Positions 1-44,164 of a stretch of 64,000 nt of DNA are shown here, one piece after another. This DNA is from Macrostomum lignano (taxonomy: Eukaryota): contig NIVC01001753.1 in the NCBI GenBank assembly GCA_002269645.1, positions 177,808-241,807 on the forward strand, in the 5' to 3' direction. The stretch's first letter is position 1; every line of letters begins with the position of its first letter. The notes under the pieces are model-generated. The model ran no database searches. It was not told where the DNA came from and worked only from the letters and a program-made list of their open reading frames with translations. Made by a program: the position numbers and the translations under genes.

Positions 1-41
1 CTCATACAAGCCTCATACATACTTTAATTGAAAAAATATAG

Positions 42-637
42 GTAGACCTCGATGCCTCATTCGGCAGTGGCGACGTCGGCAGTGGCAGTGGCAACGACGA
101 AGGCCCTGCCGACGTCACTATCCGCGGCCCTACGCGGGGAGCTAGCTTAAAGGGTGCCCGAAAGGCAGCAGGACAAGCAGAAGTCCTCCGGCGGCTCCTT
201 AACAACGATGACTCAGCAGTAACTGTTAGTGCTACCCGGAGCAAAGGCCGCGGAGCTTTTGCTGCGTGTGCCCTCGCCAGAGGAGCATACGTATGCGAGT
301 ATGCAGGTAAGCTTCTTAGCAAGACGGAATCCGACACTCGCTACGTCGAGCTCGCCGAGGCCGACAAAGACACGTTTTTTTTATTTAACTTTGATTTCAA
401 TGGCCGGGAATATGCTATCGACGCCACGGACACCGATCGCGTCGGTTCTTAAATCATTCTCGGACAAAAAAAAACTGCCGAGTAGTCACCACCGGTGTCC
501 AATGTCCGGGAGGCGTGATTCGACCGGCCCTATATTTCCAGACTACAAAATATGTTCCGAAGGGACGTGAACTTTTATTCGACTACGGCCCTAGGGACGC
601 GGAAACTCTGGAGAGTTGTAAGTGGCTGAACGATTAA
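42..637 (+). pseudogene. KMT5A/SETD8 (PR-Set7)-like SET-domain terminal exon with one frameshift at ~443-446; missed by the ORF track
   Basis: Frame starting at 42 (after a TAG acceptor at 39-41) reads ...SKGRGAFAACALARGAYVCEYAGKLLSKTESDTRY...YAIDATDTDRVG then stops at 450. The shifted frame from 443 reads RFLNHSRTKKNCRV...KGRELLFDYGPRDAETLESCKWLND* (stop 635-637). This follows SETD8 motifs GKGRG, VEYxG, DAT, RLINHS and ELLYDYGDR...PWL in order. Confidence 0.85.
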
Positions 638-1084
638 AATAAAACTCGTTCTAAAAATATTCCCGTCAGAAATCAATACAAGATAAAGCTTAAACATACT
701 TAAAAAATCGATTTAGATCACTTACAATTCTTTACTTAATAGCTTAATTGCTTAGTTGCTTAATACTTAATTACTTCATGGCTGATTTATTGCTCATAAT
801 TTTTTTCATTGACCTCCTTATATTTTCTTTTTTAATTTTTGGTTTGCTTAGTACTTCGTATTTTACTTTGCTTACAATTTTGTGTTGCTTTGCTTATCAT
901 TTTGCTTATTGGCTTGCTTTCCGCATTATTTTGCTTATTATTTTGCTTTTTGGTTTGATAATTGAAGATTTTCTTTCCCTAGTGTGCCATGCTTCGAAAA
1001 AAATAACATGGTCAATAATGAGATAAGAATGTCGCAGCATTTCCAAGAAATAAATTCGATTACTTAATTCGAAACTAATTAATG

Positions 1085-3600
1085 TAAAGTTCCCGGTCTT
1101 TTTATATTATTTCTAGAACCTGAAGGGAGAATAATGCTCCAGACATATACTCTAGAAAATCAGTACACTTTCTAAGAAGGTCGGTATACTGATATGAAGT
1201 TTCTTCACTTTAGCTTCTGGCCATCCTAGGTTTTGGTAGTCGGACTTTCAGTTGTGTAAACATTCTGAAATCGTGTATAGACCTCCTAAAGCGAAAAATA
1301 TCTTAAGTAGTTGTCAAACATTTTTCTATGCGGCCAAGTGAATCTCGACTTGGCTGTTGTGCGCTCTATTATGCTTGCCCATACAGTTAAGTAGTAAGTT
1401 TTTCAGCTCAAAGGTTAGGTACTATTGGGGCATTCAACTGCATGCTCTTGTTCTTAACCATACAAGTCCATATTATACACTTTATTATGAGTAGCGCAAT
1501 GAACGTTTGAGAGTCCTGAAGGTAACTCTCACCCTCGTCAGGAGAACCGACGTATGCCTATGTCAGAGTAGTAAGTTTTTCAGGGGACATGCAATATCTG
1601 TCGTGTCTTGACCATACTGTCTTTAATGCCTCGTATAAGAATGTTTAAAGTCAATTGTTACTCTGAGAATATATCAAGGAACTTATAAAAGTATTTTAGT
1701 AGAAATATGAGGGGCTATTCGCCCCTTACGAGGGGCATTTCGCCCCTCATAATTATAAGCCCATCTTGACTACTAAATATCGTCGCTCAGTAGAGTGATA
1801 AGCGTATCAAAATGACTGAGCGGACTCGGTCATACTGATATGACGTTACTTCACTTTAGCTTCTGGCCATCCTAGGTTTTGGTAGTCGGACTTTCAGTTG
1901 TGTAAAAATTCTGAAATCGTGTATAGACCTCCTAAAGCGAAAAAATATCCTAAGTAGTTGTCAAACATTTTTCTATGCGGCCAAGTGAATCTCGACTTGG
2001 CTTTTATTTGCTCTTTGATGTTTGCCAATATAGTGAGGAGTAAGATTTTCAACTCAGAGGTTAGGTACTATTGGGGCATTCAACTGCATGCTCTTGTTCT
2101 TAACCATACAAGTCCATGTTATACACTTTATTATGAGTAGCGCAATGAACGTTTGAGAGTCCTGAAGGTAACTCTCACCCTCGTCAGGAGAACCGACGTA
2201 TGCCTATGTCAGAGTAGTAAGTTTTTCAGGGGACATGCAATATCTGCCGTGTCTTGACCATACTGTCTTTAATGCCTCGTATAAGAATGTTTAAAGTCAA
2301 TTGTTACTCTGAGAATATATCAAGGAACTTATAAAAGTATTTTAGTAGAAATATGAGGGGCTATTCGCCCCTTACGAGGGGCATTTCGCCCCTCATAATT
2401 ATAAGCCTATCTTGACTACTTAATATCGTCGCTCAGTAGAGTGATAAGCGTAATAAAATGACTGAGCGCACTCTTGCGATAAAGCAAAGATATGATATAA
2501 ATTTCCCTGTCTTTTTATATTATTTCTGGAATCTGAAGAGAGAATAATGCTCCAGACCTATACTCTAGAAAATCAGTACACTTTCTAAGAAGGTCGATAT
2601 ACTGATATGAAGTTTCTTCACTTTAGCTTCTGGCCATCCTAGGTTTGTGTATTCGGACTTTCAGTTGTGTAAACATTCTGAAATCGTGTATAGACCTCCT
2701 AAAGCGAAAAATATCCTAAGTAGTTGTCAAACATTTTTCTATGCGGCCAAGTGAATCTCGACTTGGCTGTTGTGCGCTCTATTATGCTTGCCCATACAGT
2801 TAAGTAGTAAGTTTTTCAGCTCAAAGGTTAGGTACTATTGTGGCATTCAACTGCATGCTCTTGTTCTTAACCATACAAGTCCATGTTATACACTTTATTA
2901 TGAGTAGCGCAATGAACGTTTGAGAGTCCTGAAGGTAACTCTCACCCTCGTCAGGAGAACCGACGTATGCCTATGTCAGAGTAGTAAGTTTTTCAGGGGA
3001 CATGCAATATCTGGCATGTCATGACTATACTGTCTTTATTGCCTCTTATAAGAAGGTTTAAAGTCAATTGTTACTCTGAGAATATATCAAGGAACTTATA
3101 AAAGTATTTTAGTAGAAATATGAGGGGCTATTCGCCCCTTACGAGGGGCATTTCGCCCCTCATAATTATAAGCCCATCTTGACTACTAAATATCGTCGCT
3201 CAGTAGAGTGATAAGCGTAATAAAAGGACTGAGCGCACTCTTGCGATAAAGCAAAGATATGATATAAATTTCCCTGTCTTTTTATATTATTTCTGGAGTC
3301 TGAAGAGAGAATAATGCTCCAGACATCTACTCTAGAAAATCAGTACACTTTCTAAGAAGGTCGATATACTGATATGACGTTACTTCACTTTAGCTTCTGG
3401 CCATCCTAGGTTTTGGTAGTCGGACTTTCAGTTATGTAAATGTGTTCAAAGTCAATTGTTACTCAGAGAATATAGGAAAGGAACTTATAAAAGTGTTTTA
3501 GTAGAGATAGGAGGGGCTATTTGCCCCTCAAGAGGGGCATTTCGCCCCTCATAATTTTAAGCCCATCTTGACTACTAAATATCGTCGCTCAGTAGAGTGA
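1085..3600. repeat. Complex tandem array, ~650-770 bp unit, about 3.3 copies
   Basis: CTTCACTTTAGCTTCTGGCCATCC recurs at 1203, 1849, 2616 and 3383. Each unit has a double GAGGGGC..GCCCCT hairpin (~1709, 2354, 3123, 3511). Confidence 0.9.
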
Positions 3601-4585
3601 TAAGCGGATAATTCAGATCTAAATCTGAATCTCACCCTATTGGAAAAGAGGCACCCTGAGATCTCACTGTAGGATTGTAAGATTAGATAGTCCGTATAAT
3701 ATATGTTAGATGTGACCCCTATCTCATACCCGAAAAACGTATCTAAAGGTAAATCTCACCTAATCGGAAAAGTCTCACCCTGAGATCTCGGATTAGGATG
3801 GTATAGAAAATCCTAATGACAAGGTGACCTCTATCTCATACCTTGGAAAAGCGTCGAAAGTAAATGTCACTCTATTAAGCTTTTTGGGTTAATTCCCCTC
3901 CTGACCGCCTACGGAGGTCAATGGACCTCAAATAGTGGCTTAGGTTGATAGAGAAACGAAAGGATTTATAGATTGTATTGCGGAAAAAAAAGAAAAAAAT
4001 ACATGTATTCTTATGGTGAGGGGCTTCTCGCACATGGCGAGGGGCTTCTCGCGCCCCCTGGAGGGTTTAATAATTTTAAGCCCATCTTGACTACTAAATA
4101 TCGTCGCTCAGTAGAGTGATAAGCGGATAATTCAGATCTAAATCTGAATCTCACCCTATTGGAAAAGAGGCACCCTGAGATCTCACTGTAGGATTGTAAG
4201 ATTAGATAGTCCGTATAATATATGTTAGATGTGACCCCTATCTCATACCCGAAAAACGTATCTAAAGGTAAATCTCACCTAATCGGAAAAGTCTCACCCT
4301 GAGATCTCGGATTAGGATGGTATAGAAAATCCTAATGACAAGGTGACCTCTATCTCATACCTTGGAAAAGCGTCAAAAGTAAATGTCACTCTATTAAGCT
4401 TTTTTGGGTTAATTCCCCCCCTGACCGCCTACGGAGGTCAAGGGACCTCAAATAGTGGCTTAGGTTGATAGAGAAACGAAAGGATTTATAGATTGTATTG
4501 CGGAAAAAAAAAGAAAAAAATACATGTATTCTTATGGTGAGGGGCTTCTCGCACATGGCGAGGGGCTTCTCGCGCCCCCTGGAGG
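3552..4585. repeat. Tandem duplication with a 519-bp period
   Basis: TAATTTTAAGCCCATCTTGACTAC... starts at 3552 and 4071, and the following ~500 bp are near-identical. Confidence 0.9.
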
Positions 4586-4772
4586 GGCGTTTCGCAAGGT
4601 AAGGGGCGAAGAGCCCCTCGCCGCGAGAACCCCCTCGTGAGGGGGTTAGTCCGCCAGGAGCCCCTCGGATGCAGATTAGGGTTTTGGTTAGGGTTAGAAT
4701 TTTGACAGGAGATTTTTTAAGATTTCAAGGCTACATGTAGCTTATTAAAAATACGTGTATTGCATTTCTTTG

Positions 4773-4801
4773 GCTCCCCAACGGGGGGCGTAGATTGCTA
4801 G
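4773..4801 (+). mobile_element. Canonical Helitron 3' terminus; the element extends leftwards, probably beyond the window start
   Basis: GC-rich hairpin GCTCCCC-AAC-GGGGGGC (4773-4789), an 8-nt spacer, CTAG (4798-4801), then T, as expected for insertion at an AT dinucleotide. Confidence 0.7.
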
Positions 4802-4915
4802 TAAATGCTAAAGCTGAAAAGCAGTTATACAGCCCTATTTTTCTGAATTTAGAGTTTGCGAATGCTTAGGATGAAAAGCATAGTTTAACACGCAGAGACT
4901 TGCAACAAGACTCAC

Positions 4916-5151
4916 CTAGCTGTCGTCCCCTCTTTGCGGCCGGAGGCTGAGACTGCTGCTGCTGCTGCTGTGAGGGGCCTGCTCGCCCCCACAAAGCTGA
5001 AATAGCGGCTTCAGCGGCTGGGCGTTTTGATGCCATTCTTTGCTTCTGCTTCTTCTTCTGCGGCTGCTGCTGCTGCGATTGCGGCTGATGCTGCTGTGAT
5101 TGCGGCTGTGACTGCTGATGCCGATACTCCTGCAATCTCCTTTATGTACCC
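4916..5151 (-). other. Possible Gln-rich orphan exon
   Basis: Minus-strand CCCTTCCTACAG acceptor and CTAG|GTGAGT donor flank an open Q-rich frame (MASKRPAAEAAISALWGRAGPSQQQ...). No partner exon or homology was recognised. Confidence 0.3.
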
Positions 5152-5228
5152 CTGTAGGAAGGGATGCCGCAAACAGAATGCGCGCGGTGTGCATTATTTC
5201 TCTTTCCCCTGTACTGCATTTGCAAATT

Positions 5229-5425
5229 AGTGTACAATTGTACACTCAGACCCCAACTTGGTATAGAAAAGTTGGGGTCTGAAAATACCCCATCATTTTC
5301 GTTCTCGCACAGATTGTAATTGGATCTTAGTGTATCTAGCCAACCGGTAGTGCTGTAGGAACGAAAAATGCAGACTGCAGTCTCACCTCCTCAGAGTACA
5401 GTCGCTTTCGCAGGTATATAAAGGA
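5229..5425 (+). promoter_or_regulatory. Palindrome/hairpin cluster followed by a TATA box
   Basis: Perfect 18-bp palindrome AGTGTACAATTGTACACT (5229-5246). A 14-bp-stem hairpin TCAGACCCCAACTT/AAGTTGGGGTCTGA (5246-5282). Palindrome AGACTGCAGTCT (~5372-5383). GTATATAAAGG at ~5415. Confidence 0.55.
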
Positions 5426-6167
5426 CGACGCTGGAGTTGAAATTTTTCAGAATTCTCGCTCTGACACTCTCAGCATCAGCAGCAGCATCAGTCGCTCTCT
5501 TTCTCCGTGAAACTCTGTTAAAATGTCTATTCCACTTGTTGATGAAATATTTTAAAATTGTTCTTCTTCTGGTCTCTCACTTCTATGGCTCTGTCTATTT
5601 CAAATATCAATGTGAGAGCCAAATAACTGAGGCGGCGGATTCAACTGACTTTTCCTGATGATGCAAAACACTTGATAGTAACTTACAGACCGTTGTATTT
5701 GATGGTCACAATCTCGAGATGTTATCTTACAAAATATGATGTCTAAGATGGAATTCCAAATAAGAAGCTCGTTTTGTTCGAGTTCCAAGGGGTTTCCAAG
5801 TTTTCGGGTGAACCGAAGGTTCAGTCTATTGTGGAACGTGGGTTGGTTGTTGTTTTGGTTTTAGTGAGTCAATTTATCAGTTTTAGTATTTGGGTTGAGA
5901 CCCTAACTGTGTCAATCAAAAGTAGTCAGAGTAGGTATGTTAGAATAGCGAGAAGAGAGAAGAGAGGCGAAAGAGAGGCGAGGCAAGGCGAGCTCCTTGC
6001 TTGGTTAAAATGGGCTTTTATAGTACTTTTCAGTCTTGATCGCATTGGATAGTACATAGCTGCTTTTCATTGGTTGAGGTTGGGGTCGTGTCCCCAGCTT
6101 TTGCTAGTTGGAGCGCATTCATTGGTTAAAATACATTCAATCTGGATGGGAACTTTCTAGAGCCAAA

Positions 6168-6878
6168 ATGTGTCACTTCATTGAAAATTACGTGGTGCGC
6201 AAGCCCACATTCGATACTGATCGAGAACTGATTAAGATTCGGCGTTTCTACACCGACAAGAAAGGCAACTACAAGCACGGTTTCCAAGGCGTGTTTCTGA
6301 CTCGCATCGAGTGGCAGCATCTTAAGCGGGCGCGCTGGATTATTGAGTCTCTGCGGATCCGTGACTACTCTCGTCATGAAAGGTTTCAGCTGGGCGAGAG
6401 CGGTCGCAAGATTCTGGAAGTGAAAAACAACCAGATTTGGCTGCATCGCAACAACCCGGCCGACTCCGACAACGGATGCTGCGATGAGGGCGAGCGCTGG
6501 AAATACTCAATCAAGTTGAGCATTAAATTGTGGACTGCTCTAATGGATGCTGACGTTGATTCGCTGTTTGTCTCGCAGTCGCCGCCACCGCTGCCAAGAC
6601 GACGGCTTCAGAGCCAGCATCGTGGTTCAACGGCAGCAGCAGCAACAGCAATGATGATAGACGGTAAGGGTAGCCGCTGCCGCCGCAGTGCTGACACCCC
6701 GCCGCCGATTGAACTGCAGCCGCCGCCGGTGAAGAAGCTTCCCACTACGGCTACGGCTGGCAGCGAAGGCGACGGCAGCAGCGGCAACGGCAGCTACAAG
6801 TGGTGGTACTCGTTTCCTCCGGACTCGACTGAGGAATTCCAAGCTATGCCTGGGAGGCGGGGCGCATATATTGGTTAA
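6168..6878 (+). CDS. Tandem PC4/SUB1-like (putative ssDNA-binding) domain protein, solo copy, 236 aa from the first ATG
   Basis: LIKIRRFYTDKKGNYKHGFQGVFLTRIEWQHLK resembles the PC4 core (IDIREYW...KPGRKGISLNPEQWSQLK). A second, weaker repeat reads FQLGESGRK...SIKLSIKLWTAL. The tail is low-complexity. Confidence 0.6.
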   Translation: MCHFIENYVVRKPTFDTDRELIKIRRFYTDKKGNYKHGFQGVFLTRIEWQHLKRARWIIESLRIRDYSRHERFQLGESGRKILEVKNNQIWLHRNNPADSDNGCCDEGERWKYSIKLSIKLWTALMDADVDSLFVSQSPPPLPRRRLQSQHRGSTAAAATAMMIDGKGSRCRRSADTPPPIELQPPPVKKLPTTATAGSEGDGSSGNGSYKWWYSFPPDSTEEFQAMPGRRGAYIG

Positions 6879-7667
6879 ACTAAAGGGGAACGGATAAGGC
6901 TTGCTACTCCTACGCGACTCTGTCAATTCAACCATTCCCGAACCGCGACTGCTCGACAACCCATTATGGCTATGCAAGCCCAACTCGAAAGGACGAGGAA
7001 GACGGCGGATCAATGGTGGTGGCTCTGTCGGCGGTTGTGGGAACTCGAGTTGCTGCTGGAGGACGGCTGGCCCCGTGACACGAAGCGGGGTGCTCGGCGG
7101 GGTTCACGGCTCCTGTCAGCGTTCAGACGGCTAATCACACCCGTCCGCAAGTGACCTCAGTGCCAAATCAAGGAATCAGTGATCCAAGTCACTGAGCCGG
7201 TCTCTGAGCTCGGTTTCAATGATAACCTTAGAGAACAACTCACAGAAGCAGTGACAATTTAGGTCATTCATTCAAACTACTGGGCTAAAAAACTCGGCTA
7301 TATTTTGCAGTCATCTGGAATATTGCATTCGATCTGAAAATTTTAAACTGAGTTTGAATACTCGTAAATAAAGCATTTACAGAAATGCAATTAGCTTGTA
7401 TTTAGTTTTTTTAAAACAAAGAAGCAAACAGATTGTTCGGGTTCTTCTCGATAGCCACAGTCACGTGCATTCTCATCGAGCCTTGGTGAAGTAGCACCTC
7501 AGCAGCCTCTCTATGATCTCGACAGCCGAGTTGTACAAGTCCATGTCGAAGCTGGAGCTCTGCGAGTCGGAGAACACCGTGGCCGACTCTGTGACTCGGA
7601 TCTGCGGACTGTGGGGCAGAGGCGGCAGGGGCTGATGAACTGGCTAAGCTGGGATAGATGGGCTTAT

Positions 7668-8575: not shown

Positions 8576-10845
8576 ATAAAAATTAAACAAATTGTAATTT
8601 TCCACCAAATAAAATTGCAATTTGAGTCAATTGCCTCAAGAAAATTGCAAGGTTTAAAATTTTTGCACAATTTGGGGGGTCATGTGAACAATGCACACCT
8701 GCCTGCCTGACCTGTCGGTGTCGGCAATAGCAAATTTGCCAGCAACGTCATTGACTTGTATTGACTTGGCGTGAAGGAATCCACAAGTTCCATCAGAGTC
8801 TCCCCAGTGTTCCGTGTGCCAGAATGATATATGTTTGGTAGCTATGATAGCTATGCCATGATAAATTGGTATGGCTATATTTAGTACATTACTAAAACTT
8901 TTAGAGCTACAATTTAGCTGATATTTGGTCTTCTCTTTGCTTTAGCTTTATTTAAAATTTTAGCTTTCCCTTACTAATATAGTGTAGTTTTCAGAAAATT
9001 CTAGATTTTTTAAAACAAAAAGCTGCGCAAGTTTGCAAGCATAGGGCCTATGAATATTTTATTATTTTATACACAAAATGCTTTTTATACAAAAAATTGT
9101 CTTTGAGTATTATAACCTAATATTAGCTCAATTTTTATACCAAAGAGCTTGCTTGCACAATAGCCATGCACATATACCTATTATTGAATTGCATGCATGG
9201 CACAGCAGCTAGCAATTGATTTAATCAATTTTAATCAATTGAGAATTGGGGTCCTTGAATCAATGCATTGGCATTGGCAAACCTAATTAAAAATTATTGT
9301 TATTAGATTGTTTTATAATGTTATATCGCACATAAAGAATAAAACTAAAATTATAACTATTATTATAAATATAAACCTACAATAGGTGTAATCTGTGCTA
9401 ATTCCATCAATGGGACATTGGCCTAGAATAACTAGTAGAAAGAAGTAGAAAGATAGGCATAGATAAGCATAATAGGCTTACTTAAAAGTCAAAGCCCTTA
9501 GCTAAAAGTTAGTCATAAAGCCTAAGTTGTAAGACCCACCAGGTCCAGGCCTAATATTGGAGATAGACTAGAGATTAGAGCCAATGAATAAAGAATTAAA
9601 GCATTAACAAAAATGCAATAGTTAAGTTTCAAAACAGAAGTAAATGAGTTCTTGTATATATTGTATAGATTCAAATCTCATTTAATCTTGATGTATTAAC
9701 ACTTTAACACTTTCAACAATTATTAAGGAGTATGCCGCCGAAACGACCTGGAAGGAAGCCTAAACGCGCTACCTACGGGCGTCCATTCGAGTCTAAAACG
9801 AAGCCGCCAGCCGTCGCTATTGATTGCAAGACAGGCGAACCTGCTGCTGCTGCTGCTGCTGCTGCTACTGCTCTTGAGCCTGAATCAAGCACACCTGCTG
9901 TCGCTACTGTTGTATCGGAAGTTACGAATTTCGCAGTTGCTGCTGCTGCTTCTGGTGGTTCTGACAATGTTGTTGCTGCTGAAGATGCGACTGTAGACTA
10001 TGAATTGCGCAATGCTGCTGCTGCTTTGAAGGAGAGTGGATTGTGTGACGAAACTCGTGGTAAGCTTGTGTTACTCCTTGCCATTGCCAACTTTCACATA
10101 CGAATAGATTGTAACGGAACTGGAATAGTTGGATTCAGATGTCATGAAAGTTGGATGATAAAGTTTAGAATGCTGTTTTATGTATATGCTTGAATTATAA
10201 GCCTATAACTTAGTATTATACTCACCCTAATGTGCTTCAGACTGCCCAATTGCTGTTGTCGTGTCTACTACTGATGAATTAGCAGGACAACAAGCTGAAT
10301 TGGACGAAGCTGCTGCTGCACTCAGAGAAGCAGGTTTTGGCCACACTGACGGTAAGCCCTGCCTTAGTTTAGTGTCTATTTTGGGTGGCATAGTTTTTTA
10401 AATCAAGATTTTGAAATTTAATATAATAAATGCTAATATAGAATCTACAAGTATTAAGATTGGAATGTTTGGCCATATCTCAGATTTCTCAATGCAGACA
10501 TTCCACAACTGTTAATTTGTATTTCGTCAATGTAGCATTTTAGAGAAAAGCGATTTTGAAAAGTCATGGTTCGAACAAGGAATATTCTTTCATCAATATT
10601 TAAAGCGCCATTATCGAACCAGTCTCGTTAGTATTTTTGCTGGTTGGGTGGGTTTTAATGGAAAATTAAGATTAATAGTTTCAGTTTTGGAAGTGGGGTT
10701 TTCGGTAGTCACTTAAGTCACTGCAGCTATAAGTTGTTTGAGGGTTGTAAAGCACTAGCACTATAGTTCTGTAAAAGCAGACAGACCAAGTGGTAAGCTG
10801 ATCCAATTTTTTGTTACAAAAAGTACATGTCTTTTAACTTCAAAG

Positions 10846-11345
10846 GTGTCGCGACTCTGGAAGACGACACAGAGGACCGAGTGAGTCTGGCGAGGCTACA
10901 AGTTGGCCGTGCCCCACAATGGGTGCCCTTGTCTGCCTGCTGGTTGAAGCGCATCGCAGGTGATGGAAACTGGTTCTTTTCGGCTCTGTCGGATCAATTG
11001 CAAGGCACAGCTTTGGAAATGAACGCAGATAATCTTCGACAAGCGCTGGCAATTCAGCTAGAGAATTGGATCGACAGTGCGGAGAACGACACTGGCATTT
11101 CCGAAGCAGAGTGGCGCGATTTGTTGGTAAAGACCAAACGGAAAGGCGAATATGTTTCTGACCACGTGGCTTCAGCAGCAGCTAGACTGCTTGGCATTGA
11201 GATCTAGCTCGTATGTGTACCAGAACATGGACGCTGGTTCTAATCTCGACGGCATTTATCTAGGCCCAGTCGGTGTGGAACCGCGAGCGACAGTTTGATT
11301 GCATTTTAATCGGCAAGCTGAGCATTACCAGTCGGTACATGTGCG
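10846..11345 (+). pseudogene. OTU-like cysteine protease domain, disrupted
   Basis: RIAGDGNWFFSALS (OTU GDGNC motif with C>W), ...GEYVSDHVASAAARLL, and a shifted frame giving HFNRQAEHYQSV (His motif). Stops at ~11205 and ~11296. Confidence 0.75.
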
Positions 11346-12206
11346 CCAATCGTCTCGTCTAGCCGCTGAGGATGATGGTGCAGCCAAGATGATGCCGCCG
11401 CCGCCGCCGCCGCCGCCTCCTGCGATTCCGATGCAGAGTGATGCGCAGAAAGTGCAAGAATGAAAAGAAGTGAAATGTAACCGACGAGCATGCAGGAGGG
11501 TTTTAGGTGCGGCTGCGACTGATGTGGACAACAAGTTTAGCATTAGAGTCGACGAGAATCGGTTCAATTTACTATGGAATGTCGACCTAGATGCGGACGA
11601 GGAGGAGCCAACTCTTTCTGTGTGTAGCGGCAATGATTCAACCAGCAAGGTTTCGTCGAGTGTTTCGCGGCGGAGTCGTCGAAATCGAAGTGTTCCCAGT
11701 TGTCCTACGCGACGTAGCAGTCGTTTAAGCGCGAAAGCGTGCAACAGCAGCAATGCGTCTGTATTGTCGTCAGCAGAAGCATCTGACAGTTGCGCTTCAA
11801 GTGTCGTTCGACGCCGAAAGCGAATTGTCAAGCCTGGCAGTCCAACGCGTCGAAGCGAGCGATTACTAGCCAAGAAAAGGCGCATAGAAGAAGGTGACGC
11901 TTCTTCAGTTGGTAAATCGAATTTAAGCAGCATTGGAGCGGCTGCAGAGTCTGACAAAATGAGCTGCATTGCACGGGAGGAAGAAGTCGAGTTGGCAAGT
12001 GTAGTTTCAGAAGAGAGCAATAATAATCAGCGACCGACAAAGACCAAGACTAGACAAAGACAAGGACAAAATGTTCAATTTGAGAGTCGAAGTTCACCAA
12101 GAAAGATGGCCAGTAACCTACAGATACTGTTTCAGAAGCATCGCCGACAAAGTGCAGGCGTAAACCGGACAGCCTTGAAGAGGGTCGTTCTTCGCCTAGG
12201 AAAAAG

Positions 12207-15169
12207 GTGCACATTGAGCAGCAGCAGCAGCAGCAGCAGCAACGAGTTGAAATTGGGGCTGAAGTGCCGGAAATCGAGCAAGTTAACCCTGAAGAAAATA
12301 ATCCTGATGCTGAACAGCAAGATGCTGGTGATATCAGTTTGCCGCATTGTCTTCGCAATCCATTTACTAAGCAGTACAAAAAGATGCGAGTTGACTTTTT
12401 TCAAGAATGCATTTCGAAGCTGTGTAATTTGAAGCGATGCTTGGTGTGTAAAGAAAAATTTCCCGGCGTTTTCATTAAGCACAATAGTGACGTAGCTTGC
12501 CATCGATGTGTTAGAGATTCTGGAAAGCCAAAACTATTTAGTGACGAAAATAATGCCAATCCAATGTGTGAGCAGCCGGAAGAACTACGCGATTTGTCAG
12601 TGGCAGAGCAAATGCTGATTTCTCCGGTACTGTCTGTTATTGTAGTCTGTCGATTGTTTCGCAAGGCCAGCACGCTTTGAGAGGGCATGGAATCATGTTT
12701 CCGCAGGATCAGACAAGCGTTGTGAGAGAATTGCCGAGACGAACTCTACCTGTGGTGCTGATGTATGACAAAAAGATGCAAAACAATCCTGGCAGTACAG
12801 TTACGGGAGCGATGAACAATCTGCGAGTAAGACGCGACAAGGTGTTGAATGCAATCAGGTATCTGATTAATAATAATCAATATTTTCAACGATTTTCTGT
12901 CGGTATTGATCGCGAAGCGTTGAATTCGTTGCCAGAGAATGGATATGCGCAGCAAATCAAAGAAATGGTTAATGAAATGGACGCTCAAGAAGTCATCAAT
13001 GTTGATCTTGATGCGGCAGAAGAGGAAGCCAGGCAGCGTGATGAAGATGAGCAAAGGCAACAAATGGAAGAAGTTCAGTTGGAAGAGACGACAAGCGCTT
13101 TGTTGAATACGCCATTGCGTCGTTTGGAAGTAAAGATTCGCGATCGTTTGCTAGAAGAGAAATTGCAATGGCCAAGATCGAGCCGAGTACCGGTGAATGA
13201 ATTCGAACAAGAAGGCTTGTTTAGTCTGGCCTATCCTCACCTATTTCCTGACGGCAAAGGCGACTACAAGACTCCGCGAGTGCGTTCGATAGGCCTGGGC
13301 GACTATGCGAAGCACCTGATGCAGTTTCACTGCTCGAGATTTCGTTGCGATCCTCGCTTTCGCTTTTTCATTGAGAACATGGTGATGCGATGGAGAGCAT
13401 TAGAAGTTGGACGAGTATTTGTGCACGACAAGAATTTGGCTGGCTTAAGTGCGCCAGAGATGCTGGAGAAGCTGAAAGATCCAGCAGTGATGTCCAGCGT
13501 GTCAGCCAGAGCGTCAGAGTTGCGTGGAACAGCCAGCTATTGGCAAAGCAAGCGTAGACAGTTGGAAGCAATGATTAAAACAATTGGTTTGCCGCACTAT
13601 TTTGTGACCTTATCCGCGGCGGATATTCAGTGGCCAGAGTTGTTGCAAGTTTGGCAAATCGAAGAAGACGTCGACAATGATAATTGGCAAGAAATCCGAG
13701 ACGAGTTGCTTTCTAGACTGCAAAAGGATCCTGGCATGGCGGATACTGTGTTTTGGATTCGTTTTGAATTGTTTTTGCAAAATTTTTTTGTTGAACACTG
13801 GAAAGTAAAGGACTTTTGGCTTCGTATCGAGTATCAGAGTCGAGGAAGCCCGCATGTTCATGGCTGCGTTTGGATGCCGGACGGAGTGGATGTGACTTCG
13901 GAATCCTTGCAAGCAGAAGATTTGGTTGCCTTTGTGGACAAGTACATTTGCAGTTGGAACACGTGCATGGACGAATCAGATAGCGGTCGCGAAATTTCGT
14001 CCGGCGGAGTAGGAGCGCAGCCGGCTCGATTGAAGCCGTCCGAAATTAAGGACGATAAAGCCGATTTGCAAGCACTTCTTCACAACAACATGAGGCACTT
14101 AAGGTGCAGTAATCGGTGCCTACGAAAGGAAAAGAACGGCTCTATGAAGTGTCGATACAAATATCCGCGAGATTTGCAGACAAAGACTGTCGCCAAAAAG
14201 CTGTCGAGTTTAAACTGGAAGGTTGAGACGCAGCGCAACGACCAATATATTGGCATGTACAATCCTCAAGTACTGTGCATGTGGAGAGCTAACGTAGACA
14301 TTCAGATGATTTCTTCGGCCAAAGATTTGATTCGCTATTTGATCAAGTATGCAAGCAAAGGAGAGAAGGAATCGGAGCAGTTGCAAGAGTTGAATCGTCG
14401 CTAACTTTCGATGGAACAGCAGCAGCAGCAGCAACAGCAGCCGGAGTCAGTGGACATTGATAATGCAGCAGAAAATGATAATAATCAGCAGCAACAGCAG
14501 CATGACGAGTATAGCCGAACAAATACTGCACGTCGCATTGTTCAGCAGCACTTGATGCAAGTTGGAGCGCACGACTATTCAGCACAAGAGGCTATGCATC
14601 TGGTATTACAGACACCGATGTACAAGGCGTCGCGAGAGTTTGTCTACGTTCAAACTGGCGAGACTAGAGCGATTGAGAGTCGAGGCGTTTGCAAGAATAG
14701 TATTGAAAAGTACGCAAATCGGCCGGCACAATTGGAGAATGAGACAGTGTATCGATTCTTTTCGGACTATATTCCCCCGATGCGTCAACAAAGACACGGT
14801 GGTAAACAAGTTGCCGTCTACAAGAAGCGACTAGCGGGCAAGGAAGCAGTTTTGATTATGAGTCCGTTTTTGCGCTCAACAGAAAGCGACGATAAACGGC
14901 GCGAACAATACTATCGGCAGCAGGTACTACTGTGGAGCTGTTGGCGAACCGAAGAGCAAGCAAAGGGATCGCATGCAAGCTGGCGCGAGGCCTACGAGGC
15001 GATGATGCAAACGGAAGCGTGTCAGCTGGTTGTGCGCGATTTGGACGACCTGCGCAACGATGAAGCCGACGAGGAACGCGAAGCAGTCGCCGATTTGCCA
15101 GACATGACTGCCGCGAATGCCGAATCAGTTGCAGGTCCAGCTTATCCGGAGCGTCAGCAAGAGGATTGA
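12207..15169 (+). pseudogene. Helitron Rep (HUH endonuclease) region with N-terminal Cys cluster
   Basis: CLVC...CHRC...LFSDENN...EQMLIS, then a frameshift at ~12660 into RGHGIMFPQD. Further motifs: AYPHLFPDG, FVTLSAADIQWPEL, IEYQSRGSPHVHG, RYLIKYASKGE. In-frame TAA at 14402-14404, then YSAQEA. Confidence 0.92.
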
Positions 15170-17003
15170 TTGGATGGCAGCACTGGGTGCAAAGCATGCG
15201 GACATTCAGCTGAATGTCAACAAGAATCCGGAAGATACTCTGCCAGTTGCGTCAGAAGGTTTCGATTGGAGTGCTGCTTCAGATTGGCAATTTCCGAGTC
15301 TGGCAGAGGCGAAGCAGTTTTTAATGACCGAATTGACTAAGCCTGTTAGACGTGTAGCTGGAATTACCACCGAAGATGGTGCAGGCGCTAATCGTCAAAC
15401 GATTGACGTTTCACTGCTGAATGAGAGACAGCGGAAGCTCTACGACATGATTGACATGATTGACATGATTGACAATCAATTGAAGCTTGAACGGCTGGCC
15501 GAAAGTGACACTACTAACAATACTACTGAGTCGGGAAAGATGCCTCCACCACTGCGAGTAATTTTGTATGGCAGCGCTGGAACAGGCAAGAGTTTTCTGA
15601 TTGCTGCACTACGAAAATTGATTGGTGAGGACAAGTGCAAAGTAATGGCACCGACTGGTGTGGCTGCGTTCAACATTGCTGGCGAGACACTGCATTCAGC
15701 TTTGAAGTTAAACGTAAAGTTTTCGACTACGGCGTGTACTACTAATGCTGACGGTTCAACGACTTCGGGCAGCAGCAAGGCATTGTCAGACATGCAATCG
15801 GTATGGTCAAATGTGCGCTACATAATCATTGACGAGTTTAGCATGGTTGGCCAAAGGACACTGGCAAAGGTGCACAACCGGCTGTGCGAACTGTTTCCTG
15901 AGGAGAAGCGAGACACGCTTGAAGAAGGATATTTCGGCGGACGGTCAATTATTTTGATGGGCGATGTGTTTCAGCTGCCTCCCGTGCAAGACAAACAGCT
16001 GTATGTGTTTAACAAGAATGCTAAAGATAATTTGACACCGATTGGCTATCAAGTGTGCCAGAGTTTCAAAACGGTTGTTTATCTAAACAAGCAGGTGCGT
16101 CAAGCAAATGACACAGAGTTTGCCAGCATTCTAGAGTCTCTTCGCGAAGGCAAAGTAACCGAAGCCATTTGGAAGACTGTAATGGACAAGTGTCAAGTAG
16201 CAGCTGCAGACATGCTACCGCTAGATGTTGATGGCAAATGCACGCTATTGTACCACACAAATGAAGATGTGTCTAATGCAAACTGTGAGGAGCTGCGAAA
16301 AATTGTCGATGATAACAATCCGGTGCGGATAATCAATGCAACTTGTACTGGAAGGCAACCGCTGACTGGCAGCAATGCTGATAATAGCAAGCAGAAATCG
16401 GAGACAGGCCTGGCCAGGCGACTATTTCTGGCGATTGGAGCACGCGTGATGTTGACTCGGAATCTATCCGTGCAAAATGGCCTGGTGAATGGCTCGGTTG
16501 GAACGGTTCGTGGCATCTGCTATGCGAATGGAAAGAAGCCGCCAAACGATTTGCCTGACTGCATTTGGGTTGAATTCGAGCGCTACAATGGCCCGGCAAT
16601 GCAAGCCATGCGGCTGACCAGAGGAGATGGTAGTAGCAGCAGCAGCAGCAGCAGCGAGTGTGCGTCATCAGTTTCTGTTGTGCCAATTCTGCCAGTGTCG
16701 AGCCAGTGGCTTCAGCGAGGCGCCAGCTTGTCGAGACAGCAGTTTCCGCTGAGGCTAGCCTGGGCAATCACTATTCACAAGTCGCAAGGCCTAACGATTG
16801 ACAAGGCGTTTGTACAGCTGGGTAAGGGCCGCAAGTCGCCGCCAGCAGGTCTGTACTACACTGCCGTGAGTAGAGTTCGTGCCTTGTCTGATCTGTTTGT
16901 TACCTGTTGCGATTTCGTTAGATTTCAGCGCCTATTTTCTACAGGTGGTATTCTGGCACAGGTAAATGAGCAAAAGCGTTTATTAGCTTTGTGCGAGAAA
17001 TGA
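15165..17003 (+). CDS. Pif1-family (SF1B) helicase of the Helitron, joined to Rep across a frameshift at ~15165
   Basis: GSAGTGKS (Walker A), APTGVAAFNIAGETLHS, IIIDEFSMVG, MGDVFQLPPV, QFPLRLAWAITIHKSQGLT, YTAVSRV. No C-terminal AP-endonuclease follows. Confidence 0.95.
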   Translation: MDWMAALGAKHADIQLNVNKNPEDTLPVASEGFDWSAASDWQFPSLAEAKQFLMTELTKPVRRVAGITTEDGAGANRQTIDVSLLNERQRKLYDMIDMIDMIDNQLKLERLAESDTTNNTTESGKMPPPLRVILYGSAGTGKSFLIAALRKLIGEDKCKVMAPTGVAAFNIAGETLHSALKLNVKFSTTACTTNADGSTTSGSSKALSDMQSVWSNVRYIIIDEFSMVGQRTLAKVHNRLCELFPEEKRDTLEEGYFGGRSIILMGDVFQLPPVQDKQLYVFNKNAKDNLTPIGYQVCQSFKTVVYLNKQVRQANDTEFASILESLREGKVTEAIWKTVMDKCQVAAADMLPLDVDGKCTLLYHTNEDVSNANCEELRKIVDDNNPVRIINATCTGRQPLTGSNADNSKQKSETGLARRLFLAIGARVMLTRNLSVQNGLVNGSVGTVRGICYANGKKPPNDLPDCIWVEFERYNGPAMQAMRLTRGDGSSSSSSSSECASSVSVVPILPVSSQWLQRGASLSRQQFPLRLAWAITIHKSQGLTIDKAFVQLGKGRKSPPAGLYYTAVSRVRALSDLFVTCCDFVRFQRLFSTGGILAQVNEQKRLLALCEK

Positions 17004-17279
17004 GCCAGCAGCAATTGGCGTTGTTGATATTATAGTAATGTAGTTATTAGTCACTCGGTATTGAGTGGGTGTTACGCGCAGCGAAAATCTAGCGTTGACG
17101 TTCTACACAGCAGACATGGCAATATTGCGTTTATTTAAATCACTGCTAGAAAGTAGTCGCCTACCATGCAAGGTTAGATTTTTCTGCGCATAATCTTATG
17201 CCTATTGTCAACGCTAGTGCATGGTGGGCCAGGATTTTAGAAATTTATATAAGTCGTTGATAATGGAATTCCATTCCAT

Positions 17280-18160
17280 TGCCTAGCCTCATTAATTATG
17301 AGTGTCAAGGCGGTCTACTGTGCATGTGGTTGCTCTTGTTTAGCACAAATTCTCTTGCATTCTGCAGGCTGTGATAATTTCAGCATTATTCAGCAGACAG
17401 AATAGTTTGTTAAGCATTCGCGCCTTAGAAGGTGGGCAATCGTGAGGTGAAAAGCTTTCCTAGCTGTGATATAGTATACTGTTCGGATGGATAGGTTTAT
17501 GCACAGTAGGCAATGCAGTACTGCGGTATATAGCTTAGGAAAGTTGAAATGTGTGCCAAATGATTAAATAATTGCCTCTGCTCATTAAGTATGGGCAGTA
17601 TGGCGGTCTACTGTGCACTTTGTTCGCCCTTGTGTGACACACCACTATTGCGTTTTGCCTACTGATAATGTGACACTATTCAAACGTTATCCAGTTGCAA
17701 GATGCGTGTCACTCATGCGCCTTAGAAGGTGGGCGTTCGAATTTCATAAAATTGCCGACGATAGTGCACAGTAGACAATGCAGTACTGCGGAGATACGAC
17801 TCTCGATTATTTGCCTAGACTCATTAGGTATGAGTACTATGGCGGCTTGCTATGCACGTGGTTGCATTCGGGTAGCACCTTATTGCGTGCTACTCGTTCG
17901 CCTTAGAAGGTGGGCAATCGATTTATGGTTTAAATACCAGAACTTTAATGTCGGCATTAGTTTGTGCATAGCAGGCACTGCAATATTGCGATGGCCTATG
18001 GCCTAGGTAGGAAACAAATTGCCGTGGCTCATTAGAATGAGTTCATTGGCGGTCTGCTGTGTAGGTGGTTGCACTTGGGCAGCAGCACTGTATACTGTTG
18101 TATTCAGCATGCAGAAAAGTGTGCTGCCCATTCGCCTTAAGCGTGCAATCGTTATTAATC
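17280..18160. repeat. Degenerate tandem repeat (~240-300 bp period) 3' of the helicase
   Basis: CGCCTTAGAAGGTGGGC recurs at ~17420, 17717 and 17840. CATTA....ATG.....GGCGGTCT.CTGTG recurs at ~17290, 17584, 17823 and 18030. Confidence 0.7.
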
Positions 18161-19305
18161 TATTGGTGAATTGGCTGCGCGTAACATCGCCCGCAAAATG
18201 TGCAGTAAAGGTCCGTCAAAGTGTGAGCGGCATCGTTTGGCATTGCTTTGATATTGCTTTGATATCAACATTGCTGCTCTGTAAGAAATAATAGTTTGCC
18301 TTTCAAAAAAGAAAGCTATTTTACTTATGAATTATTTAAGATGGATAAAACATCCTCTTCTACCGACTAGCTATTCGATGCACGACGCTTTGAGTTTTAG
18401 ACACAGTTTTTATTTAAAAAATATTTTAAATAGCTGCTTTATGAACCAATCTTTGATTTATGATTACAACTGTGTCTAATTAAGGACTTATCACGCAAAG
18501 TTGCCGCCCTGCCTTATCCAGGCATGCAACGTGATCATCTGTTTACTGCAAAGTCGTATCCAATGGCTTCACGAGCCTGCGGGTGTTACGCCGTTCTTTA
18601 GAAGTGAAGAGTCTATAATAATTCTTATGTTCTGCGGAACATGTTAAAACTCTTGTCTCTAAGTTTTGGCAACAGAATTGGAACGACGCAAGTGTAATTA
18701 ATGACTTTTGATTGAATTTTATTACCACTATTCGACTATTCCACTTTGACAATTTAGGTATTGTAAACTACAAGCAACTTAAATAATTTTTCGATTCACT
18801 AATTTAATTAACTAAGTAGACCACATAAACGAATAAAACTTATAATATATTATTCCTTGAAAATTTGTTATGCTAGATTATACTAAGACATAGTTTTACT
18901 AGGCCTCGGTCTTTTGAGATTTTTGTGTGTGAAATGTTTTTTTATACTTTTTTATACGCTTAATATGATGCCAATGTTTGTCAGAATCAGAATTCAGTGA
19001 GTCAGTTCTTCTCCATAATTGTTACAATGCATTTCTTGTGGAAAGGGCTACTTGACCTTTGCAGAAAAGTAGTTTTTATTTTTAGCTTTCATCTTTTTAG
19101 CATTGACCAATCTCCTAGCCACGATAAAATTATCCTCACGAAAAGATTTCTGATCTAATAGTGCAAGTTTGAAGACAATTGGTTCACACATTGTCAAATT
19201 GAGCCAAAATTCGTATAGATAGATACATAGATTGGTAGACAGTTTTATTTTTAGTATAACTGAATGATGATGACTAGTCATTTGGTTTGTATTTTCTGCT
19301 TTCAG

Positions 19306-27000: not shown

Positions 27001-27056
27001 AGCGCATTCATTGGTTAAAATACATTCAATCTGGATGGGAACTTTCTAGAGCCAAA

Positions 27057-27767
27057 ATGTGTCACTTCATTGAAAATTACGTGGTGCGCAAGCCCACATT
27101 CGATACTGATCGAGAACTGATTAAGATTCGGCGTTTCTACACCGACAAGAAAGGCAACTACAAGCACGGTTTCCAAGGCGTGTTTCTGACTCGCATCGAG
27201 TGGCAGCATCTTAAGCGGGCGCGCTGGATTATTGAGTCTCTGCGGATCCGTGACTACTCTCGTCATGAACGGTTTCAGCTGGGCGAGAGCGGTCGCAAGA
27301 TTCTGGAAGTGAAAAACAACCAGATTTGGCTGCATCGCAACAACCCGGCCGACTCCGACAACGGATGCTGCGATGAGGGCGAGCGCTGGAAATACTCAAT
27401 CAAGTTGAGCATTAAATTGTGGACTGCTCTAATGGATGCTGACGTTGATTCGCTGTTTGTCTCGCAGTCGCCGCCACCGCTGCCAAGACGACGGCTTCAG
27501 AGCCAGCATCGTGGTTCAACGGCAGCAGCAGCAGCAGCAATGATGATAGACGGTAAGGGTAGCCGCTGCCGCCGCAGTGCTGACACCCCGCCGCCGATTG
27601 AACTGCAGCCGCCGCCGGTGAAGAAGCTTCCCACTACGGCTACGGCTGGCAGCGAAGGCGACGGCAGCAGCGGCAACGGCAGCTACAAGTGGTGGTACTC
27701 GTTTCCTCCGGACTCGACTGAGGAATTCCAAGCTATGCCTGGGAGGCGGGGCGCATATATTGGTTAA
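27057..27767 (+). CDS. Tandem PC4-like domain protein, array copy 1
   Basis: Translation matches 6168-6878 except for one T>A change in the Ala run. Confidence 0.6.
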   Translation: MCHFIENYVVRKPTFDTDRELIKIRRFYTDKKGNYKHGFQGVFLTRIEWQHLKRARWIIESLRIRDYSRHERFQLGESGRKILEVKNNQIWLHRNNPADSDNGCCDEGERWKYSIKLSIKLWTALMDADVDSLFVSQSPPPLPRRRLQSQHRGSTAAAAAAMMIDGKGSRCRRSADTPPPIELQPPPVKKLPTTATAGSEGDGSSGNGSYKWWYSFPPDSTEEFQAMPGRRGAYIG

Positions 27768-33939: not shown

Positions 33940-34230
33940 ATGTGTCACTTCATTGAAAATTACGTGGTGCGCAAGCCCACATTCGATACTGATCGAGAAC
34001 TGATTAAGATTCGGCGTTTCTACACCGACAAGAAAGGCAACTACAAGCACGGTTTCCAAGGCGTGTTTCTGACTCGCATCGAGTGGCAGCATCTTAAGCG
34101 GGCGCGCTGGATTATTGAGTCTCTGCGGATCCGTGACTACTCTCGTCATGAACGGTTTCAGCTGGGCGAGAGCGGTCGCAAGATTCTGGAAGTGAAAAAC
34201 AACCAGATTTGGCTGCATCGCAACAACCCG

Positions 34231-34266
<36 letters not shown>

Positions 34267-43659: not shown

Positions 43660-43667
43660 GAGAGACC

Positions 43668-43739
<72 letters not shown>

Positions 43740-43761
43740 GGAGAGAGAGAGGGGAGGGAGG

Positions 43762-43845
<84 letters not shown>

Positions 43846-43858
43846 GGGAGGGAGGGAG

Positions 43859-43892
<34 letters not shown>

Positions 43893-43917
43893 AATAGAGA
43901 GAGAGAGAGGGGGGAGG

Positions 43918-44005
<88 letters not shown>

Positions 44006-44081
44006 AGGGAGGGAGAGAGAGAGAGAGAGAGAAATAGAGAGAGAGAGAGAGAAATAGAGAGAGAGAGGGGGGGGAGGGAGG

Positions 44082-44120
<39 letters not shown>

Positions 44121-44126
44121 GGGGGG

Positions 44127-44164
<38 letters not shown>

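Follow-up and report, generated by a model that had tools for sequence, protein, structure and literature searches.

A Frameshifted KMT5A/SETD8-like SET Exon Next to Satellite Arrays in Macrostomum lignano, and Its Doubtful Link to a Helitron

The SET Exon and Its Surroundings

The stretch of Macrostomum lignano DNA analysed here (64,000 nucleotides, hereafter the window) begins 41 nt before an exon that encodes a SET domain; the remainder of the gene, and any left boundary of an element that might contain it, fall outside the window. The domain is written on the forward strand in two reading frames, as the preliminary description of this DNA had proposed. Its N-terminal part (positions 42-446, frame 3), delineated by translation, tblastn and Pfam, comprises the N-flank helix, the GRG motif and the Tyr of EYAG, while its C-terminal part (443-637, frame 2) comprises RFLNHS, ELLFDYG and a C-flank ending in ...CKWLND, followed by the stop codon TAA at 635-637. 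Frame 3 is open over 42-449 and runs into a TAA at 450-452; homology resumes in frame 2 at the CGG of 443-445, which places the frameshift at 443-446. When the two frames are joined, the resulting peptide of 199 aa matches the Pfam SET profile over its whole length (1-105 of 105, E=2.5e-15), and tblastn assigns its residues 22-135 to positions 105-446 and its residues 133-199 to positions 434-634, that is, to both frames. All the catalytic and AdoMet-binding motifs (GRG, EY, NHS and ELxFDY) are kept in the joined peptide, where they align to those of SETD8 and are invariant across two alignments of relatives.

The frameshift is present in the sequence as given, and it is the single lesion in 596 nt, the frames being open on either side; the CpG observed/expected ratio of the exon is 1.2 and no further decay is seen. 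Since the reading frame is broken at 443-446, no active enzyme is possible from the exon as sequenced. The preliminary description had attributed the lesion to the loss of 4 bp from a GTCG-GTCG duplet. In support of this, the Arg at the frameshift is invariant in all aligned relatives and is regained only by supplying 4 nt (gtc gg[t cgg] ttc); the loss itself, by slippage within GTCG/GTCG, is a model that we infer from the sequence. A tiny intron at 443-446 was rejected, as homology is continuous across the site (…DRVG-RFLNHS…).

An in-frame TAG at 39-41 precedes the 42-446 segment, and its AG could serve as the splice acceptor of the exon, for which the window contains no in-frame start codon. 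The sequence on the 5' side is non-homologous, and a captured, 5'-truncated fragment would look alike. At the other end, an AATAAA hexamer (638-643, forward strand) directly follows the stop codon and is a possible poly(A) signal, judging by its letters. A processed pseudogene was considered and set aside, the AATAAA having no poly(A) tract after it. The GC content at third codon positions (GC3) is 0.52-0.56 in the SET exon, 0.50 in Helitron open reading frames and 0.82 in one clear host exon; the value of the SET exon would fit a transposon-borne or a decaying gene, by a yardstick that is thin in consisting of one host exon.

Elsewhere in the window, a resident Helitron occupies ~9.7-18.2 kb, with Rep/Hel sequence at 11470-17003 (open reading frames at 12677-17003); no hairpin+CTRR end of the kind described below for 4772-4801 was found downstream of it. 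What we take to be an OTU-like motif lies near 10.9-11.2 kb, for which Pfam gave no confirmation. At 56449-57279 lies a choline-transporter exon, for which identity to a schistosome protein reaches 67%; this by itself would point to a bilaterian invertebrate, possibly a flatworm, as the host. Neither the Rfam scan nor the tRNA scan yielded anything in the window.

Relationship to KMT5A/SETD8

The best 14 matches of the peptide in a search of PDB sequences are all SETD8/KMT5A (1e-17 to 8e-15), the next being SETD2 (2.6e-11). An AlphaFold model of the joined peptide reaches a pLDDT of 77.7 overall and exceeds 78 across residues 41-190; compared with the PDB by Foldseek, this model has human SET8 as each of its best 25 matches (E ~2e-10, TM ~0.7). 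The peptide ends in ...ESCKWLND-stop, 15 residues past DYG, and the same end is found in SETD8 and in 29 relatives among the matches listed; the best 150 library matches are mostly proteins of 150-450 aa that terminate with the SET domain. At the level of sequence and predicted fold, the exon is confirmed to lie nearer to KMT5A than to other SET subfamilies. The likeness to KMT5A/SETD8 asserted in the preliminary description is thus upheld by sequence, fold and C-terminal architecture (W-L-x-x-stop), and the comparison with SET families that it had suggested, carried out as Pfam and PDB searches, put KMT5A/SETD8 first.

The peptide shares 31% identity with human KMT5A, against 50-60% for canonical orthologues. 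Its closest relative, P0005, is 46% identical to it over 152 aa, in an alignment that reaches back to about residue 31, and only 34% identical to the human protein. Of the representatives retrieved, 59 reach 50% identity or more with the human protein; since neither the peptide (31%) nor P0005 itself (34%) comes near that level, the exon would represent a divergent paralogue, and not an orthologue, of canonical KMT5A. Three weak matches were all that a word-indexed protein search returned for the peptide, an exact look-up of ten open reading frames of the window in the protein collection matched none, and a pattern scan of metagenome contigs, built on the alignment of the window peptide with P0005, retrieved only three relatives, 32% identical and located on short contigs.

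The Product-Specificity Switch

The preliminary description had reported the motif ELLFDYG with Phe in the position of human Y334, and both are confirmed, the motif at 569-589 and the Phe codon, TTC, at 578-580. In the structural record, PDB entries 3F9W/X/Y are indeed complexes of SET8-Y334F, with a dimethyl-lysine product among them. The altered product specificity that the preliminary description had drawn from this Phe is an overstatement. Phe stands at the switch in 30 of the 142 motif instances found in the best 150 family representatives, so its presence here is not unusual; it also occurs in P0005 and in five of the 59 representatives with 50% or more identity to the human protein. The switch Phe appears as a frequent natural variant of KMT5A-like proteins, carried by roughly a fifth of the closest representatives of the family.

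Satellite Arrays and the Putative Helitron 3' End

The satellites said to follow the SET domain resolve into two tandem arrays. The first (1082-3610) consists of ~3.4 copies of a 646-767 bp unit, 95-97% identical, each unit containing GC-rich palindromes of the form GAGGGGC(N5)GCCCCTC; the second (3551-4586) consists of two copies of a 519-521 bp unit, 99% identical, and contains a ~60-bp module that is also present in the tail of array 1 units. An exact search of metagenome contigs with the satellite hairpin module gave 0 matches. The arrays are enclosed by a perfect 11-bp inverted repeat, with a left arm at 699-709 (CTTAAAAAATC, forward strand) that is a candidate 5' subterminal inverted repeat (subTIR) of a HINE-like element and a right arm at 4711-4721 (GATTTTTTAAG, forward strand) that is its candidate 3' counterpart and precedes a palindrome by 51 nt. 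An irregular simple repeat of TTGCTTA type (~740-960) follows the left arm. An inverted-repeat match of at least 11 bp arose in 30 of 2000 mononucleotide shuffles (p ~0.015, uncorrected for the choice of test, for a repeat that is AT-rich). The locus at 42-4801 yielded no long terminal inverted repeats.

The palindrome forms part of the feature that had been taken for a canonical Helitron 3' end (4772-4801, forward strand), in which an imperfect 7-bp palindrome (4773-4789) is separated by 8 nt from CTAG (4798-4801), itself followed by T. The letters, GCTCCCC-AAC-GGGGGGC, 8 nt, CTAG and T, are indeed present, and they are unique in the window. It is the canonical character of this end that is in doubt; one pair of the stem is a T:G mismatch, and the fold energy does not stand out (z=-0.97). 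If a perfect 6-bp stem is required, the site is missed, and shuffled sequences yield 1.4 such sites per window; if one mismatch is allowed, the window contains nine sites (six distinct sequences) and the shuffles 2.9 on average (range 0-7). A hairpin+CTRR motif alone is no evidence for a Helitron end.

Searches within the window for further traces of a mobile element gave the same picture. Self-BLAST found no further copies of 1-5400, the terminal 30-mer has no second match with three mismatches allowed, and a short-word BLAST of the last 100 nt against the window returned nothing. No open reading frame longer than 113 aa and no Rep/Hel sequence is present in 1-5500, no Helitron 5' end belonging to 42-4801 was recognised, and 1-5400 bears no similarity to the rest of the window, the resident Helitron included. 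No Helitron hallmark joins the SET exon to the arrays.

Origin of the Exon and Alternative Explanations

Taken together, these observations are best explained, with a probability of about 0.6, if 42-637 stems from a lineage-specific, highly divergent KMT5A/SETD8 paralogue, either as its final coding exon or as a copy truncated at the 5' end, and if the satellites are a separate neighbour. The exon encodes the entire catalytic module, made up of the N-flank helix, the SET domain and a short C-flank, and would close with an ordinary gene end in which AATAAA comes directly after the stop codon; the arrays at 1082-4586 lie downstream. With its reading frame broken by one frameshift, this copy is most likely a young pseudogene. 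An intact counterpart, like P0005, would be predicted from its motifs to act as an AdoMet-dependent lysine methyltransferase, in which the switch Phe would be expected to allow more than monomethylation.

This raises the question as to whether the gene is broken at all. The 4-nt loss at 443-446 could be an error of assembly or consensus; the exon would then belong to an expressed host paralogue with predicted higher methylation states. The otherwise open frames, the retention of all catalytic motifs, the CpG ratio of 1.2 and the lack of other decay speak for it, as does the intact open reading frame of P0005 with the same Phe. However, a 4-nt deletion outside a homopolymer is atypical of sequencing error, and the window contains no in-frame start codon; an intact gene is unlikely, though it is the least unlikely of the alternatives. 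The preliminary description had gone in another direction and proposed that the SET exon, together with the satellites, was carried or captured by a Helitron that has its 3' terminus at 4801 and whose 5' end would now have to lie left of the window; the enzyme could, on this view, modulate the chromatin of the element itself. A hairpin+CTAG+T does exist at 4772-4801, the Rep/Hel open reading frames at 12677-17003 indicate that the Helitron superfamily is active in this genome, members of this superfamily with tandem repeats are known (PMC7492417), a SET gene has been described in Phytophthora proto-Helentrons (PMC4067079), and the exon itself lacks a start codon and has a transposon-like GC3. 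Against this, the 3' pattern occurs at chance level (about three per 64 kb) with an imperfect stem, there is no second copy, 5' end or Rep/Hel for the proposed element in the window, and the resident Helitron has no sequence similarity to it. The only inverted-repeat hint, at 699-709, would start any mobile element past the SET stop codon; weak as this evidence is, it fits the observation that the preliminary description had named as contrary to its own proposal, namely a 5' end between 637 and 4773. The stop codon with its AATAAA resembles an ordinary gene end, and the published SET cargo is Clr4/SUV39-like and from oomycetes, not KMT5A-like and from animals (PMC4067079). Carriage by a Helitron was thus not borne out and is improbable.

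Equally improbable is a mobile element of another kind, for instance a DNA transposon of the KDZ/Zisupton or Crypton-like type, the remaining genes of which would be located left of the window. Such an element is brought to mind by the Macrostomum lignano relative P0033 (zf-C2H2 + SET), located downstream of a KDZ transposase gene at a distance of 2 kb, by P0004, a recombinase-like model of 4152 aa in which transposon-like sequence alternates with five KMT5A-like SET domains, and by the additional domains that many members of the Hydractinia and sea urchin expansions of KMT5A-like genes possess (PMC10368294). However, adjacency in one genome is no proof, terminal inverted repeats were sought around the KDZ and SET genes of the Macrostomum locus and none were found, and there is no transposase near the exon in the window.

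The divergent paralogue beside separate satellites remains the preferred reading, and what it adds is one more divergent, probably dead copy of a SET family known to expand in several animal lineages. The exon, which lies beside satellite DNA in a very repeat-rich region, matters little as it stands. The useful results are the negative ones, namely that the switch Phe is common and that a lone hairpin+CTRR motif does not constitute evidence of a Helitron.

Comparison with Known Systems

Human KMT5A (SETD8/PR-Set7; PDB 1ZKK, 2BQZ), the H4K20 monomethylase, is the best match of the window peptide in both sequence and fold. The two have in common a SET domain at the extreme C-terminus, devoid of Cys-rich pre- or post-SET regions, and the succession of an N-flank helix, GRG, EY, NHS, ELxxDYG and a W-L-x-x-stop C-flank. 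They differ in the insert between NHS and ELxFDYG, which is longer in the window peptide, and in the residue found two positions before the C-flank Trp, which is His in the human protein (A-H-P-W), Cys in the window (S-C-K-W) and Phe in P0005; in addition, the frame of the window copy is broken and its N-terminal regulatory half would lie outside the window. P0005, from the Logan assembly of run SRR19430222, is an intact protein of 349 aa that shares RPALYF, ELLFDYG, GAFA, NHSRT and the same C-terminal end with the window peptide. Its N-terminal region harbors two C2H2-like motifs, the counterpart of which, if any, would fall left of the window. The contig of P0005 also contains a SINE-like repeat that is 73% identical to positions 62693-62956 of the window.

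Lineage-specific expansions of KMT5A-like genes have been described, with 65 genes in Hydractinia, 24 in Hydra and 61 in sea urchin (PMC10368294). Like the window gene, their members are divergent and display clear homology only to the SET domain of KMT5A. The expansions comprise tens of copies beside one canonical gene. Unlike the window gene, they mostly have the SET domain in an N-terminal position, in combination with other domains.

The satellite block invites comparison with HINEs, DINE-1 and Cg_HINE, which are non-autonomous Helentrons that have tandem repeats at their centre (PMC4067079, PMC7492417). HINEs possess subTIRs of 11-15 bp, with a short palindrome after the 3' copy and close to the end, insert into a T-rich target and often contain a microsatellite in addition to the central tandem repeats (PMC4067079, PMC7492417). 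The order of parts over ~695-4801 is the same, running from inverted repeat to simple repeat, arrays, matching inverted repeat and palindrome, and the palindrome is separated by ~12 nt from the putative end, which is flanked by T, as in HINEs. We infer by analogy that the arrays are HINE-like, and the block at ~695-4801 may be the core of a non-autonomous element of Helitron/Helentron type, with the SET exon outside it. In contrast to HINEs, the block occurs as one copy in the window, so that its boundaries are putative; its 11-bp, AT-rich subTIR is positioned 80 nt from the end (38-60 nt in HINEs), its repeat units are much longer than is usual for HINEs, and the window shows no gene for a Helentron endonuclease.

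The proto-Helentrons of Phytophthora, which carry a SET open reading frame (Thomas et al. 2014, PMC4067079), set a precedent for a rolling-circle transposon equipped with a histone-methyltransferase-like SET gene. Their oomycete SET domain is Clr4/SUV39-like and recurs across species, and its coding sequence directly precedes Rep/Hel within an element that is well delimited. For the SET exon of the window none of these traits is evident, be it the defined element, the adjoining Rep/Hel or the cross-species recurrence. Genome-wide copies in which the SET exon and the satellites had moved together would make this a second, independent rolling-circle transposon with a chromatin-modifying enzyme. 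That a rolling-circle element of a flatworm-like animal should carry a KMT5A-like SET gene with a Phe-type active site is very improbable; if it were true, it would be the animal counterpart, drawn from another SET subfamily, of the Clr4-like SET of the Phytophthora proto-Helentrons, and would imply the repeated recruitment of histone methyltransferases by rolling-circle transposons.

KMT5A-like SET exon at the left edge of the window

At the left edge of the window, adjoining satellite DNA, lies a genuine but frameshifted exon of what is probably a divergent paralogue of KMT5A (also called SETD8 or SET8, a human H4K20 methyltransferase). Its first open stretch, in frame 3, starts at base 42, immediately after an in-frame TAG (39-41), and is closed by a TAA at 450-452; a second, in frame 2, extends from about 443 to the TAA at 635-637. 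Joining both frames at 443-446 yields a 199-residue peptide that covers the whole Pfam SET profile (E=2.5e-15). Among all PDB sequences, its 14 top matches are human SETD8/KMT5A (1e-17 to 8e-15), the next family being SETD2 (2.6e-11). The AlphaFold model of the peptide is confident across the domain (mean pLDDT 77.7), with disorder only in residues 1-35, and the top 25 PDB structures returned for it by Foldseek are all SET8. The peptide ends in ...CKWLND-stop, 15 residues past DYG, as KMT5A does, and its ELLFDYG motif (569-589) aligns the Phe codon at 578-580 with human Y334, the Phe/Tyr switch residue. Profile, PDB sequence matches, fold, C-terminal end and motif alignment thus bear out both the SET domain and the KMT5A/SETD8 likeness proposed in the preliminary description.

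The break between the two frames is a frameshift rather than an intron, since homology is continuous across the site: SETD8 and all other relatives align through it without interruption (...DATDTDRVG/RFLNHS..., the slash marking the shift), and an intron at 443-446 was rejected for this reason. The Arg that precedes F-L-N-H-S is invariant in the alignments of relatives and would be recovered only if four nucleotides were missing from the sequence as given, a loss that the suggested slippage at a GTCG-GTCG duplet would fit. The frameshift is the sole lesion across 596 nt. There is no in-frame start codon within the window, so that the exon is either spliced to sequence left of base 1 (through the AG at 40-41) or part of a 5'-truncated copy.

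Place in the KMT5A-like family

Among 1.84 billion cluster representatives searched exhaustively with HMMER, 2218 relatives reach E <= 1e-3, and the best 150 of these are mostly short proteins with a C-terminal SET domain. Whereas 59 retrieved representatives share at least 50% identity with the catalytic domain of human KMT5A, the window peptide shares just 31% with the human protein, and its nearest relative by far, the intact 349-aa protein P0005 from a Logan assembly (46% identity, E=3e-33), is itself only 34% identical to the human enzyme. Judged by these identities, the SET exon appears to belong to a divergent side branch and not to be a conserved KMT5A orthologue. P0005 resembles the window peptide in having both RPALYF and ELLFDYG, and its N-terminal region carries two C2H2-like motifs. 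Lineage-specific expansions of KMT5A-like genes are documented, with 65 genes in Hydractinia, 24 in Hydra and 61 in sea urchin (PMC10368294).

The statement that the Phe/Tyr switch governs product specificity agrees with PDB entries 3F9W/X/Y, which are SET8-Y334F complexes, one of them holding a dimethyl-lysine product. The special significance attached to Phe in this copy does not survive comparison with the family: among the best 150 representatives, 104 motif instances have Tyr as the switch residue and 30 have Phe, Phe occurs in 5 of the 59 closest to human KMT5A, and the ELLFDYG seen in P0005 also recurs in two weak matches, P0002 and P0003. Phe occurs naturally and commonly in the KMT5A-like family and is no mark of a transposon-specific change.

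Surrounding sequence

The animal DNA of the window is rich in repeats. Only one clearly conserved host gene was found in it, represented by an exon of 276 aa (56449-57279, +) that codes for part of the high-affinity choline transporter SLC5A7/CHT1, with best identities of 66-67% to a schistosome protein and a Logan protein; on this exon rests the assignment of the source to a bilaterian, possibly a flatworm. A short LTR retrotransposon (57434-61190, -) is inserted right after this exon; its 253-bp LTRs (57434-57686 and 60938-61190) are 98.8% identical, and its 844-aa ORF contains aspartyl protease, reverse transcriptase and RNase H, with no integrase seen in the element. The repeat at 62693-62956, SINE-like and tRNA-like at one end, draws no call from ARAGORN or Rfam; it shares 73% identity with positions 55-315 of the Logan contig encoding P0005, which suggests that the source organisms of the two sequences are related. 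Long minisatellite arrays (41866-42820, 43652-44931, 46566-48887, 54241-55492 and 61181-61735) display strong strand skew in composition, GC skew reaching +0.46 at one extreme and -0.30 at the other, and in some of them both strands contain long open frames, none of which has a Pfam match.

A 3.44-kb tandem unit occupies 24364-34240 (about 2.9 copies, 99.5% identity), and a partial 1.6-kb copy lies at 5543-7153 (99%). Each copy holds a 256-aa ORF (e.g. 6108-6878) with a marginal PC4 single-stranded-DNA-binding match (E=9e-6), preceded just upstream by a hairpin+TTGCTAG+T motif that ends in the same 8 nt as are found at 4794-4801; as the partial copy spans this motif, the match is probably a coincidence.

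A Helitron-superfamily element resides at 9732-18200 (+), with a Helitron_like_N Rep (12677-14404, +, E=9e-31), DUF6570 and a PIF1 helicase (15117-17003, +, E=9e-22). Its coding parts lie in several frames and include an in-frame stop (14402-14404); it is thus degenerate or intron-containing. No endonuclease domain follows its helicase; its 3' region (17260-18160) contains about four copies of a ~250-300 bp repeat, and no hairpin+CTRR end in the style of 4772-4801 was found behind the element. A motif at ~10.9-11.2 kb (GDGNWFFSALSDQL), which we take to be OTU-like, is not confirmed by Pfam.

Is the SET exon Helitron cargo?

The preliminary description read 42-4801 as a Helitron arm that had captured or carried the SET exon. 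The satellites it placed downstream of the exon are present as two tandem arrays, at 1082-3610 (unit 646-767 bp, ~3.4 copies) and 3551-4586 (unit 519-521 bp, 2 copies), which have in common a short module with GAGGGGC-N5-GCCCCTC palindromes; telomere-type TTAGGG motifs (gattagggttttggttagggttagaa) stand at 4675-4700, in the flank to the right of the arrays. The letters of the proposed 3' end (4772-4801) are likewise as described, but do not in themselves establish a canonical end: the stem has a T:G mismatch, the fold of the hairpin is unremarkable (z=-0.97) and the pattern occurs at chance-like rates. A GC-rich hairpin standing 4-15 nt upstream of CTRR+T was sought in the window and in shuffled windows. 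Requiring a flawless stem of 6 bp or more left 4772-4801 undetected, shuffled windows averaging 1.4 matches; a 7-bp stem with one mismatch allowed gave 9 matches in the window, representing 6 distinct sequences, and a mean of 2.9 (range 0-7) in the shuffles. The hairpin+CTRR pattern alone is no evidence for a Helitron end.

Carriage of the exon by a Helitron is unsupported and mildly contradicted. The SET locus offers no positive evidence for a Helitron: 42-4801 contains no Rep/Hel and no ORF longer than 113 aa, no part of it has a second copy within the window, its satellite hairpin module has no exact match in metagenome contigs, and the resident Rep/PIF1 element has no sequence in common with 1-5400. 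The AATAAA at 638-643, directly 3' of the stop codon, resembles an ordinary gene end. On the other side, the GC3 of the exon (0.52-0.56) is nearer to that of the Helitron ORFs (0.50) than to that of the one unambiguous host exon (0.82); P0033, a relative from Macrostomum lignano (zf-C2H2 + SET), adjoins a KDZ transposase gene, although no inverted repeats enclose the pair; the fish-like model P0004 has five KMT5A-like SET domains interleaved with transposon-like sequence; and Phytophthora proto-Helentrons carry a Clr4-like SET ORF (PMC4067079). These cases indicate that KMT5A-like SET domains can be transposon-associated. In Macrostomum lignano NIVC01000910.1 (5145-12004 and 15681-21400), the zf-C2H2+SET gene lies 2 kb downstream of the KDZ transposase gene and is flanked downstream by an array of ~600-bp units (at least 10 copies) and upstream by 20/159-bp repeats.

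Comparison of the satellite block with HINEs

HINEs, DINE-1 and Cg_HINE are non-autonomous Helentrons; they consist, in order, of a short 5' subterminal inverted repeat, in many cases a microsatellite, tandem repeats in the middle, the partner of the inverted repeat and a short palindrome close to the 3' end, and insert at T-rich sites (PMC4067079, PMC7492417). The two satellite arrays lie between the arms of a perfect 11-bp inverted repeat (699-709, CTTAAAAAATC; complement at 4711-4721), of a kind that arose in 30 of 2000 shuffles of both flanks, in a test chosen post hoc. If this repeat is meaningful, the left end of the element lies ~60 nt past the SET stop and the exon falls outside it, a weak hint against the exon being cargo. 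With one copy and AT-rich arms, the block is a weak candidate for a HINE; as in HINEs, a simple repeat, here of TTGCTTA type, follows the left arm and a palindrome (4773-4789) follows the right arm.
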